This document shows positions 28,346 through 33,594 of a DNA stretch of 33,594 bases, in pieces. Position 1 is the first letter of the stretch. Each line of letters begins with the position of its first letter. The DNA is from Parasitella parasitica NRRL 2501 (Eukaryota > Fungi > Mucoromycota): the NCBI GenBank assembly GCA_025201805.1, contig MU619422.1:1-33594 (forward strand), given 5' to 3'. The notes beneath the pieces were generated by a model. It made no database searches. It was not told the DNA's origin and was given only the letters and a program-made list of their open reading frames with translations. The position numbers were made by a program, and so were the translations under genes.

Positions 28346-28946
28346 AAGAAGGATAGTAAGAAAATAAAGGAAAAGAAAGAAGAAAAGTAAAACTCAAAAG
28401 GGGGACAAGTTAATACCTGAATTTAATAACATGTGTGCAACAACACATCCGTTTTTAATCCACTCGCCTTTAGTCATGAATTACAAAAGACGTGCCGTTT
28501 GACAACGCTCATCAGGGCCAACTCGGGGTGATGATGTGTGAACCGGTTTAGCAAATAATGGCTCTGTTAAAACAGGATGCCAAGCAGTTTATACTGTAAA
28601 CAGCAAAACTGTAAGGTAGCGCCACACTCGCAAAACAAAAAAGCCGGAAATATCTGCTGCTTGCAGACTTTTGTTTTGTTTAGTTTTTATTGTTCTGTTC
28701 TCTTTTCGGTAACTTGTTTTCTTTCTTTTTTTAAACCATCATTATACAACTGGAATAAAAAAGCCTTCGAGACATTGGATACTCCATTCTAATCTTCTTT
28801 AATCACTCGCAACAACTTTTTTTGTTTTTTCTTTTCCTGAAGCAAACAGGTCGTTATCAAACAACCGAAAAAAAGACTCTCAGGTATGTCTTGGCTTTCT
28901 CGGTAAAATAACAAGATGTTTATTTTCTTAATATTTCTTGACAGAT

Positions 28947-30319
28947 ATGAATTCATTCAACCGATCCTCTGTAAATATGCCCTCAGCACAAGCAACTTTG
29001 TTGGCTACTTCCAGCTATCCTTTGCAAACATCCCCGCCTTCATCTAATACAAGCCATATACCAAGGCCCAGACCAGCGTCCCATCTAGACGACAAACGAA
29101 TGAAATCAAAATCTTCTTCAGAGGATAATAATGGTTGGAAAACATCATCATCGTCGAATATTAAAAAAGATATGGAAATTTGGAAGATGTCTGGAAGGCC
29201 TCGTCATGCTCAGCTTCAACGTGTGGAGGATCCAATGTTTAGAAGACAATCTGCAACCCCGACTATGATGAGTAGTAATAATTCTCCTTGGCAACCAAGG
29301 CCGTTGCCAAGAGAGCCATCGCCTCCTATAGCCACTGAGCCATTCAATCCATTATATTCTGCAGATAATCCACCATTCCATTTCAACACGCCTCTACAGG
29401 CACCTGCTCTTATCAACCATAACACTACAATGGTACCAGAGTACCATTCTTATCCTCCATCGACAGCATCCTATCCTATCAATGATGCAATGTATCAAAC
29501 TAGCAACGTTGAGTATCCTCCTGCCATGATAAATGCTGTAGCAGCTCCATACCCGCCAGCTGCAATAGATAGTAGCTACCAGCTTCCATTGTCTAATTTA
29601 GATTACCACAATTACCATCATCATCACCAACAACAGCAACCACTTGGATATACACCATACAATAACATGCCTCCTCTTCCTCTACAACAACAGCAATACA
29701 GCGAGCAAACCATGTACCCTCCTTCCACATCATTGATTTCTCAAGCTCCATTACCAGCATCTCTTACCCCGATTGAATTAACAGATGTACCACCACCGCC
29801 ACCGGTCAGCAAAGAGAATGCGCAAACAGCAGATGATAAATCGAAAAAAAAGAAGGAAAAGTCTGAAAGTAGGTATCAACCATTATGATTTTGTAGCGCT
29901 CATTTTCACAGAGATATTGTGTTTAAAACAGAAAAAGTTCGACAAATTACAGTTCAATCGATCAACTCAGAACATCGTGTTTGGATTGATGTGCTTCCTG
30001 CCGAGACTGGATTATCTTTAGCAGAAAAGATCCATATTATTGCTACATTCAGAACTCGAAAAATTGTTTCAATCACAACTACTTCAGGTAGAAAGGTTCC
30101 TCTGGACAATCGGCCCGTGTTTGGTAGCTGGATGGACATGGAGAATTTCGAGGATGGTGAAAGATGGGCTGTAGAATGGCGAGAAAATGATAGAGGCGTT
30201 GTTGACAGATTCTTTGCCAAAGTGGTTCAGGTAGATTTGTTTTGTTCTGCTCAAACTACTTTAACTCAACTAAAATTTTTTAGGGTAAGAGAAAAGATGC
30301 AGCAAAAGAGAAAGATTAA
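28947..30319 (+). CDS. Uncharacterised protein: long Pro/Ser/Gln-rich disordered region plus compact C-terminal domain of about 95 aa
   Basis: The long ORF 28938-29888 splices (intron about 29869-29931) into KKVRQITVQSINSEHRVWIDV...ERWAVEW. A further intron 30231-30283 leads to GKRKDAAKEKD*. A probable 5'UTR intron lies at 28884-28944. Confidence 0.78.
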
Positions 30320-30845
30320 TTCCATGCAAGCGATAACAGTGGACGTACTCATATATTGCACACCAATGATGATAACCAACAACAATAAAACATACATATT
30401 AAATTATTTCCAGAATCAAAATAATATGATTTGCCATCTTAATAATTCAAGAAAAGAGAAATGAGTAAAAAATGAACTGCTTTTTTATAATAATAGATTA
30501 TCGCCATTTATTATACAATACGCCTATATATATGTTACCAGATTATTGAGTAGTACCTTTGGCAACGTTCCTCACTCTTAAAATGATTCAGTGTTAGCTT
30601 AAAGACACAGAGGGGAAAAAATGAAAAGTTCACTGTCTAATCATGTAGAGTGTCAGTATATTGTATGAACGATCCAGGTACCCTTTAACATACTAGCGAT
30701 ACAATATGAAACGTCCTTGGTACAGGTAATTTTTCGCCCACAAACCACATGTGAAGATACGAAACAAAATTTTAAATTATTGAGAAACAGGAATTAATGA
30801 TTGAAGACATTGAGCGTTAGTGATAGTGCTAAAAGCCCTCCTTTT

Positions 30846-32887
30846 TCAAATATACGTACATGGATTAATCGTCGCGAGTTTTTGATGCTCGAAATAATGG
30901 AATATTTTGGGATGTTCATTGAGAATCCCTATCATTGCCAAAACCTGAATGTTGCGTGCAATATTCACATTGCGTTGCCATACACGTCCACAGTTTTCTT
31001 TTATAAACTAGGACGAAACGCAAGGTAGATGCTTTGCTGCTCCCAAGTTTCAAGGTTCCAAGTTCTTTTGTCCGGCAACCGCTTTATGCTTGTATAACGT
31101 CCATTGATTTCAATTAGCAGATTTTTGGCTTCATGCACCATATCTTCTGGAGTCGGCAGAAATTCAAGCTTCCTTCGTCTAGTTCTCCAATAATGTTGAC
31201 AAAGAGATTGTACCGCAAACATGCAAGAAGTGAAACTTATCTTTTAGTTGCTGACTATTTAATTAATGTCTCTTTATACGGTGGTGTTCTTCTTCTTTGC
31301 TTCCTGTTGAGCAAACTATCCGGATTGGTACAAGCATCTGCAACATATCTACTGGATTGATGATTGACTTCAGGAGCGTATTTCTTTCCACCAGTTAAGA
31401 AATATTTACGAGCTCAACATGTAGCTTTTGATGGCCGATGTAGTCAAGGTTTTTTGACCGTTCAGTGTCAAGAACATAAAATGAGAGAATTCTGTTCAAT
31501 CAGCCAAGTTACATTCACAATATATTGATTGATCTTATCAATCCTGATTGTTTTTGTGGCGATAATGATTTATCAGAATGAGAAAACATTTAAATAAAAC
31601 GGTTGTGAATTAATCAGGTAAAGATCTTGTTTATTACATGGAAAAAATGATGGCTTACATACTAGTGAATCTAAATGGACTGATGGGGGATAAGATACAA
31701 GTGTGAGACATGGTGTGGTTTAGATAATGGAACGATAGATTATATCTATTGTCCATGAACATGTCATGTTGAATTATAAATAAGGAACATATCACATTTA
31801 TTTATAATTCGAGAACATCAATTTTCTGATTCTTTTTTGATAACATATCCATTCATTGGTATAATCCGAATTACATTATTTAGTAATTGAGCTGAATAAC
31901 AGTAGTTTGATGAGCACATCGCTGCTGATGAACTCTTCGTTCTAGTCCTATTAATGAATATACTTTATTATATTTCTCTAAAGTTCTATTGACTAAATCT
32001 TCAATAGATTGTTGAAAATTTTTCCTTAATGGAGTCGCTGGTTTTGGCCATTCCGTTATAGGTAGTTGACTGATAAATATGGTGAGCAAACAATCTTACC
32101 TAAGATAATGATAGCTCCTTTAAATATAAAGAAAAAATTAATCCCTTTGAATTGATTTTAATATATTTACACAAACTTATTGTAGCACATCGAAGAAGAC
32201 AGCATTGCATATAAAGTATATAAAAGGCGTCGAAATTTTTAACAACATGGTTTACCATGCTTGTAGCACAACTACCAGCAGTTGATGAAAGTATACCAGT
32301 GAGCCCATGTGGTTGCCAGTTGGTAATCTGATCTTTTCATATCTTGCGGTAGAATTTGTTTAGCATTTTCTTCTTCGTGTCTCCTTTCTTCTTCCTCTTG
32401 TAACCTTCTTTATTTTATAATTTTGTTTTTTGTTTTAATGAATCTTTTAATAGTTCGAAACACAGTGGCAATACTATGTAGAGTTATATATGAAATATAC
32501 TAAAGAAAATAATTTATATAAAGAAAAGAATAGAAAAAAGATACAATTCAAGAATATTTGCTTTTAAACATACGTTATTTGACGTTAACACTGTCTTTGA
32601 TTAATTGAATAATTGAATAAAATGTTAAATTTGTAGTGAAAGAGTATTTAAAATTGACATTAAACAAGTGGTTTGTTGTTTAAGCGACCTGTGCAATGCA
32701 ATTCAAGCTTGTATATGGATATTATATTTAATTTTAGTGAAAACAAATCGAAATTTTAACACATTTTGTTTGATCCGTTTATAGTTCATTCGTTTTTAAA
32801 TAGGGTTATTTGTTTGTGCATAGACTAAATCTGATTGACTTGATTTAGAGTGTGTTTCCTGTACACAAGTAATGGTTTGAATACCAT
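30846..32887 (-). pseudogene. Degenerate Fanzor1 (eukaryotic TnpB-like RuvC nuclease) gene, transposon-derived relic
   Basis: Frame-stitched minus-strand fragments occur in the expected order: ILSSTAGSCATSMVNHVVKNF (about 32232-32295), HHIYQ..EWPK, RILSFY...YIGHQKLHVELVNI/LTGGKKY (31378-31495), LLIEINGRYTS (31088-31120, RuvC-II-like), VLVY../NCGRVWQRNVNIARNI...HPKIF (30948-30995, Zn-ribbon plus RuvC-III-like). The 3' half is well supported; the 5' boundary is tentative. Confidence 0.8.
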
Positions 32888-33594
32888 AAAAATGTAGGTA
32901 ACTTCTTCATCGCAATGTGTTTTCACGCCAAATCCGAAATCAAGTTTTATATTATGCTTACTTTTCTCATGGTTATATTATGTTCTGTATACTCGTTAAC
33001 TTTCGGTAATCACATTATTTGCTTGATAGTATGTATTTTTGCATTCAAATGATTTTATCAAGTCTTTCCAGATGCCTGGTAAGTTTCATCTCATAATTCT
33101 CGTATTACGATGGGCACATTATATCACATGTATAAATGCAAATATTCACTTATTCTCCATAAATTGAATGTTTCTTTCATTTTCTGGAAAAAGACAGCAA
33201 AAACTAAAAAATAAAATAGGATTTTCAGGAATACGAGCCTAAAAGCCAACGCTATTATTAATAGGGTAGAGGTTGAAAAGTGGGAATCTAGAGAAAAAAT
33301 CTTTAGATAGTAGGATGATGTCTATATTGGCAACCTTCTCTCAAAAAGGTAAAAGCTCTGATAAAGCATTTAATCATTTGAGTTCAAAGAAAATACTGTT
33401 GTGCCATGTATTGAAAATGAGCACGGCAGCAATTGTTTATGATAAAAGGTATTTAAGAAAGTGATAAGAACATAATTTACCAGATACAAAACTATTGAAT
33501 TTATTGATTGATGAGACAAAAAATCTGCCTATTTATATTACAATACATGAGTCAATTTATGAATACAGTCAGATCATGCTTGACATTCAATTGT

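Follow-up and report, generated by a model that had tools for sequence, protein, structure and literature searches.

Remnant of a Fanzor1 gene in what is very probably an old, dead DNA transposon copy of Parasitella parasitica

Fanzor1 proteins are eukaryotic homologues of TnpB, omegaRNA-guided RuvC nucleases that are carried by eukaryotic transposons. We analyzed 33,594 nucleotides of DNA from the fungus Parasitella parasitica NRRL 2501 (assembly GCA_025201805.1, contig MU619422.1, positions 1 to 33,594; here called the window) and conclude that the interval running on the minus strand from 33197 to ~30745 is very probably an old, non-autonomous copy of a DNA transposon with terminal inverted repeats (TIRs) that once carried a Fanzor1 gene and is now dead. 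The coding remnant is, judged by its sequence, a descendant of Fanzor1; the window copy most likely encodes no nuclease and does nothing today. It belongs to a family of which at least 14 further copies or fragments, at ~70-85% identity, were found when the genome (32.8 Mb in 450 contigs) was searched by DNA; these are named here by contig (C9 and so on), and every one of them contains stops or frameshifts. An earlier reading of the letters alone (the original prediction) had placed a hidden Fanzor/TnpB-like relic at 30846-31580; a remnant does lie there, but the element to which it belongs reaches 33197.

Descent from Fanzor1 is indicated by a hidden Markov model, A5, made from 19 outside Mucorales proteins, with no rows from the relic and no sequence from the host genome. 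When the 33.6-kb window was split into its 1705 stop-free six-frame segments and every one was compared with A5, the top segment was 30849-31007 on the minus strand (E 2e-7) and the second best 31398-31499 (minus; E 2.4e-3), while 31258-31413 and 31471-31569 (both minus) ranked next with weaker matches, and the order of the segments was collinear. The window peptide stitched from its pieces, which were joined by X at every break, aligned to A5 as one significant collinear domain (65.7 bits, E 3e-19, profile positions 215-443 of 465), with a window Gly beneath the profile Glu of 'didEylTS' and a window Asn beneath the Asp of 'WqRDiNA'; paralogs stitched likewise scored ~100 bits. The original prediction, a dead Fanzor/OMEGA copy with a RuvC and zinc-ribbon C-terminus, had been staked on a collinear match of the stitched peptide to Fanzor/TnpB proteins, and this outside-only profile supplied one. 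Against solved structures, A5 matched the Fanzor1 proteins SpuFz1 (8GKH; E 4e-26) and PpFz1 (9CF0; E 8e-14), followed by TnpB, Cas12f and the mimivirus Fanzor2 L79 (E 1e-7 to 1e-4). A second profile, A3, in which relic-family pieces were bridged by two in-genome Fanzor C-termini, matched 1057 of 1.84 billion representative proteins at E <= 1e-3.

The nearest proteins in tblastn comparisons were CEP09711.1 and CEP19244.1 of P. parasitica itself, with 67% identity to copy C9 over 66-67 aa, followed by ORX48606.1 and ORX58335.1 (Hesseltinella vesiculosa) and KAI8329827.1 (Chlamydoabsidia padenii). ORX48606.1 is an 804-aa protein that matches PF07282 at 38.7 bits, and its residues 77-119 are 53% identical to window positions 32315-32187 (E 1e-9 to 1e-12), a match that is collinear with those at the C-terminus. 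Searches with tblastn using in-genome Fanzor fragments did not reach the N-terminal half of the relic, and phmmer searches of PDB sequences with single paralog pieces and with ORX48606.1 returned nothing; only the family profile reached Fanzor structures. The GGKKY motif that the original prediction had ascribed to fungal Fanzor1 is genuine for this clade, appearing as GGRKY in ORX48606.1 and as 'Ggkky' in the profile consensus. The sequence ILSFY.LD was considered as a RuvC-I motif and rejected, as its counterpart in real Fanzor1 proteins is the FY..F.NY.GRQK helix, which lies downstream of RuvC-I.

Read back on the minus strand, all six peptide pieces quoted in the original prediction are present (31471-31569, 31398-31499, 31258-31413, 31004-31243, 30919-31083 and 30849-31007); they are spread over three alternating frames, and the coding remnant has its stop codon at 30846-30848. 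The three codons singled out there also stand where they were said to: GGA at 31100-31102 encodes the Gly of EINGRYTS, AAT at 30969-30971 the Asn of WQRNVN, and TAT at 31003-31005 occupies the site at which paralogs carry the TGT of VCKNC. The list of open reading frames (ORFs) indeed holds only part of the relic, its sole entry at the locus being a 73-aa ORF at 31001-31222. Copies at 70-85% identity (C9, C68, C74, C167 and C149) retain E, D and C at the three sites, as had been expected of the ancestor, with IDINERYTS, WQRDVNA and VCKNC where the window has Gly, Asn, and TAT plus a 4-nt insertion, respectively. The better-preserved paralog frames read VPVVCLSDGNFG...KKLLHEAE.Q.RLLLIDINERYTS, then SGC..KELG.LKFGSS.ASTL.SVLVCKNCGRVWQRDVNAARNIQ. 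Shorter fragments were found on C220, C44, C3, C124, C2, C119, C17, C10, C12 and C26.

What can still be recognized of the protein amounts to ~45 N-terminal residues and the last ~230 residues, which cover the final part of RuvC together with the TNB zinc ribbon and RuvC-III. The catalytic triad of Fanzor1 consists of the RuvC-I Asp, a Glu in the loop that precedes the TNB domain and the RuvC-III Asp (PMC11423790). As to the first of these, the Asp of the ..DPG.. strand, the window and 11 paralogous copies were translated in six frames, and none of their segments had a match to the profile below position 209. In all copies only ~200 nt separate the N-terminal remnant from the (P)KT.. motif at 31560; the same interval in ORX48606.1 spans ~360 residues and includes the TDG strands and WGIDPG (RuvC-I). 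Thus, the whole subfamily is an internal-deletion derivative lacking the first catalytic Asp, and the part expected to hold the WED/REC core together with that Asp is, on these alignments, absent from every copy found. The Fanzor Glu is 'rearranged', lying ~45 residues past the canonical site, which is itself replaced by Gly or Pro (PMC10530073), and the spacing from GDGNF to INERYTS in the paralogs is that of the rearranged Glu. In the motif (D/N)E.(Y/F).TS, C9 (INERYTS) and C167 (INECYTS) retain this Glu, whereas the window has Gly. The CxxC...CxxC of the zinc ribbon is broken: the first CxxC is entered only via a frameshift and has one Cys left, and the second reads Y...C across the 4-nt insertion. 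The RuvC-III motif is WQRNVNIARNI, with Asn rather than Asp as the third catalytic residue. Asn is native at this position in GtFz1, and the D606N variant of SpuFz1 is more active in vitro (PMC11423790), so Asn here does not by itself decide activity; the two substitutions of catalytic acids emphasized in the original prediction are real, but the change from Asp to Asn would not alone be inactivating. No uninterrupted or spliceable ORF was found: from 31569 to 30849 the frame changes at least five times and several stops occur, and the longest ORF is 73 aa. By descent the remnant belongs to Fanzor1, but of the features tested that define Fanzor1 functionally it lacks four: RuvC-I, Glu, zinc ribbon and open frame. 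With its frameshifts, stops, broken zinc ribbon and loss of the first two catalytic residues, the window copy is predicted to be incapable of making a nuclease; the decisive damage is the loss of the middle of the protein with RuvC-I, the loss of the GDGxF segment, the frameshifts and the stops.

The element is ~2.45 kb long, with an intact 5' TIR and a decayed 3' one, and its parts, in the direction of the gene, are as follows.

33177 to 33197, minus strand: 5' TIR, with a 21-nt core and similarity extending to ~34 nt; the homology that links C12, C68, C74, C124 and the window begins here.
32812 to 33176, minus strand: 5' subterminal non-coding region, aligned by blastn to C12, C44, C68, C220, C26, C124 and C149 and kept in short derivatives.
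32316 to 32811, minus strand: internal element sequence upstream of the recognizable coding remnant, with patchy 79-82% identity to C9, C68 and C74.
32187 to 32315, minus strand: N-terminal Fanzor1 remnant, located by tblastn with residues 77-119 of ORX48606.1.
31791 to 32186, minus strand: decayed rest of the N-terminal part, up to the family-wide internal deletion, with 71-73% identity to C9, C68 and C74.
31566 to 31790, minus strand: secondary insertion, absent from all paralogs, of a young 309-bp repeat that is present in high copy number and is here truncated at its 5' end.
31258 to 31569, minus strand: middle RuvC remnant in three frames, with the (P)KT.. motif, FY..F.NY.G.QK, GGKKY and a basic stretch (profile positions 215-305).
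31085 to 31243, minus strand: segment leading to the Fanzor-type catalytic Glu motif, with Glu changed to Gly (GGA at 31100-31102; window EINGRYTS, profile 'didEylTS').
31008 to 31083, minus strand: first half of the TNB zinc ribbon, entered via a frameshift common to four copies and aligned to the 'CskCgsktl' region.
30846 to 31007, minus strand: second CxxC, RuvC-III motif, C-terminal tail and stop; the best window segment against A5 (E 2e-7).
30745 to 30845, minus strand: 3' untranslated and right-end region, delimited by multiple alignments; 30 nt are deleted here and the 3' inverted repeat is degenerate.

The ends of the element were recognized by comparing copies, an inverted-repeat scan of the window alone having failed to reveal them. 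The 5' terminus CTGTCTTTTTCCAGAAAATGA at 33197-33177 is unique in the window, with 0 occurrences expected by chance, and the 3' terminus ...TCATTTTCCTGAAACAAACAG of C12, C68, C74, C124 and C2 is its reverse complement over ~21-34 nt; the inverted repeats thus lie at the limits of inter-copy homology. In the 5' subterminal region the window copy lacks ~315 nt near 33140-33145, and no protein match was found for 32316-32811. The block at 31791-32186 matches the N-terminus of CEP19244.1 in C68 and C74 (E 1e-8 and 4e-6), while the window's own sequence has no significant protein match there, 31940-32095 (EDLVNRTLEKYNKV) reaching CEP19244.1 solely via those two copies. The insertion at 31566-31790 comprises 225 bp of the 309-bp repeat and has more than 40 genomic matches at 92-95% (for example, L005 1501-1808); full copies of the repeat share 96-99.7% mutual identity. 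Further downstream, comparison with C167 and C9 places frameshifts near 31510 and 31402, ~100 nt that encode the GDGxF segment in paralogs have been lost at 31121-31137, and the TAT for TGT at 31003-31005 is followed by the frame-shifting 4-nt insertion. The ~309-bp repeat was also seen to have a sharp end, ...TTCTCATTCTGATAAATCA.

Lesions are common to copies at unlinked loci. A frameshift (a 2-nt difference) just after YTSI occurs in the window, C9, C74 and C167, though not in C68, and a deletion junction joining 32812 to 31064 (window numbering) is identical in C12, C44, C220 and C124; nothing is left of these short derivatives but 330-700 nt at the 5' end and ~300 nt at the 3' end, with the last ~250 nt of the Fanzor gene. 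Such shared lesions imply that the elements multiplied after the gene broke, and the subfamily would thus have kept transposing after the death of the gene, as the shared junctions and frameshift suggest. We propose that an ancestral TIR transposon carried a Fanzor1 gene and that an internal deletion removed its middle, including RuvC-I. Spread after inactivation was presumably brought about by a transposase acting in trans, and the copies would then have decayed neutrally to ~70-85% identity; the window copy has additionally lost GDGxF, Glu and Cys and was struck by the younger 309-bp repeat. The history of the family would comprise two rounds of internal deletion, with amplification after each and no intact copy seen. 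The short derivatives (L067, L068, L069 and L072 on C12, C44, C220 and C124) were observed to keep both inverted repeats.

A six-frame scan of the genome with PF07282 (Cas12f1-like TNB domain) gave 79 matches, ~36 of them above the cut-off, with the relic paralogs C68 (24.6 bits) and C74 (19.6 bits) among those below it. Other Fanzor1 subfamilies in this genome have C-termini that look intact. Two loci of another subfamily, L037 (C33:4797-7994) and L034 (C77:47383-50571), have long open pieces, PF07282 matches of 41-42 bits and the motifs IDPGRK (RuvC-I), FGDG.F, IDEFRTSK, CxxC and WQRDINAS; they seem less decayed than the relic family and could include introns. The 550-1120-aa 'open frames' at PF07282-positive loci on C45, C21, C8, C188, C46, C4, C64 and C155 were discarded as an artefact of reading N as X.

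Several observations weigh against the reading of the locus as a dead Fanzor1-bearing TIR transposon. The individual pieces of the window, which are short and damaged, have no Pfam match, and for the paralog pieces the only Pfam match, PF07282, scores 22.6 and 19.7 bits, under the 26.3-bit cut-off. The window's 3' inverted repeat near 30745 is degenerate, and no consistent target-site duplication (2, 3, 8 or 9 bp) was found at the flanks of the old copies C68, C74, C12 and C124. The original prediction had supposed that intact copies of the family may exist elsewhere in the genome; none of the relic subfamily was found in the sequence read, outside which lie C186 33595-34785, directly adjoining the window, and the bodies of other PF07282 loci.

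Alternative explanations differ in what they make of the broken frames. If the resemblance were a chance assembly of short motifs across frames, the free choice of breaks would inflate apparent matches, and it would fit that no lone window piece matches Pfam; yet one uninterrupted 53-aa frame reaches E 2e-7 against an independent profile, five blocks are collinear, including an N-terminal block at E 1e-9, and there are at least 14 paralogous copies, the better-preserved frames of which score ~100 bits. We give this explanation a negligible probability, and the ranking of segments against A5, together with the stitched alignment, refutes it. The locus might instead be a live Fanzor1 gene with introns that a plain ORF scan does not resolve, which is very improbable. 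Fanzor genes do acquire introns (PMC10530073), and an intron-like GTAAGT ... ACTAAC pair is present at the 3' end of the copies, but the frames switch within 0-20 nt or overlap or abut, leaving no space for introns; stops lie in frame, neither the RuvC-I region nor the GDGxF segment is left, Gly replaces the catalytic Glu and a foreign repeat has been inserted. A frame-restoring intron after YTS was considered and rejected, as the sequence that it would remove has a protein-level alignment with the first half of the zinc ribbon. The intron-like signals, GT(A/G)AGTAT with (T)ACTAAC ~45 nt further on, lie across the stop codon at ~30790-30850 and in copies C9, C68, C74, C124 and C167; a 3' AG follows them in one copy only, and in C68 the 5' part of the region is a GC-rich hairpin (CTCGCGACGG...CCGCGTGAG).

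The persistence of the family could also be explained if its members were non-autonomous omegaRNA passengers, with the guide read in trans by intact Fanzor1 paralogs. The guide RNA of OMEGA/Fanzor systems is encoded by the gene's 3' end together with the element's right end (PMC10432273, PMC10530073), and such a role would account for short derivatives that retain exactly these parts: four short copies keep the 5' 330-700 nt and the last ~300 nt with one junction, and the 3' block is the best conserved between copies (80-85%, against 71-80% elsewhere). The 3' region of C68 folds slightly better than shuffled sequences (z -1.98, marginal), but that of the window has no stable fold (z +0.98 against shuffles) and its right end is degenerate. 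Moreover, any cut-and-paste derivative must retain both ends without need of an RNA function, and the copies are 15-30% diverged, as under neutral decay. We consider this explanation highly improbable, and the related notion that the deletion derivatives could be eukaryotic counterparts of guide-RNA-only OMEGA passengers, with retention favoured by a trans-read omegaRNA, very unlikely. A dead transposon copy with the remnant of a Fanzor1 gene is the reading that we retain.

Fanzor1-bearing DNA transposons with inverted repeats were catalogued in 2013 by Bao and Jurka, with elements from Mucor (MCi), Rhizopus (ROr) and Phycomyces (PBl); the catalogue includes TIR elements carrying only Fanzor1 and non-autonomous derivatives, and SPu-1, for example, is ~2.1 kb long with 33-bp repeats (PMC3627910). 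The relic family resembles this type in its size of ~2.2-2.5 kb, its TIRs of ~21-34 nt, its Fanzor1 gene without a transposase, its multicopy nature and its non-autonomous derivatives; it differs in that all copies seen are dead and no target-site duplication is readable. The locus is one more decayed member of Fanzor1 families known in Mucorales-type fungi since 2013. Within these, CEP09711.1, CEP19244.1 and ORX48606.1 belong by sequence to the same subfamily as the relic. The Mucorales proteins show the 67% identity with C9 over the GDGxF-to-DE.TS segment and 42-53% with the window's own pieces, and share with the relic the motif order FY..F.NY.GRQK, GG(K/R)KY, GDGxF, (D/N)E.(Y/F).TS, CxxC...CxxC, WQRD.NA.RNI. 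ORX48606.1, annotated as a 'Cas12f1-like TNB domain-containing protein', is a full 804-aa model with WGIDPG, whereas the relic family lacks ~residues 186-545 and is frameshifted; CEP09711.1 and CEP19244.1 are hypothetical proteins and themselves partial models (302 and 313 aa). SpuFz1 and PpFz1 have a like catalytic layout, with Glu on the loop before TNB and Asp in RD.NA (PMC11423790), but represent other Fanzor1 subfamilies with solved omegaRNA complexes, and the relic lacks RuvC-I, Glu and an open frame. Bacterial TnpB (IS200/IS605, IS607) and Cas12f have a homologous RuvC-TNB C-terminus, and structures of TnpB and Cas12f match the family profile at E 1e-7 to 1e-4; in contrast, the relic is eukaryotic, its Glu is of the Fanzor-type rearranged kind (PMC10530073) and its match to Fanzor1 is far stronger.

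The locus has little import beyond annotation, where it illustrates that ORF-based tracks overlook decayed Fanzor1 copies; it reveals no new mechanism and no new editing enzyme. The relic does provide the anatomy of one old Mucorales Fanzor1 transposon family, and proteins of the ORX48606.1 type in related fungi are the nearest possibly intact nucleases of the subfamily. On the 3' side of the relic, 28938-30464 on the plus strand holds two ORFs of 316 aa (Pro/Gln/Ser-rich) and 181 aa, which look like host genes or exons; the relic follows them in intergenic DNA. A different repeat of ~200 bp, matched more than 30 times in the genome at 75-80% identity, occupies 33395-33594, immediately beyond the 5' end of the element and at the edge of the window.

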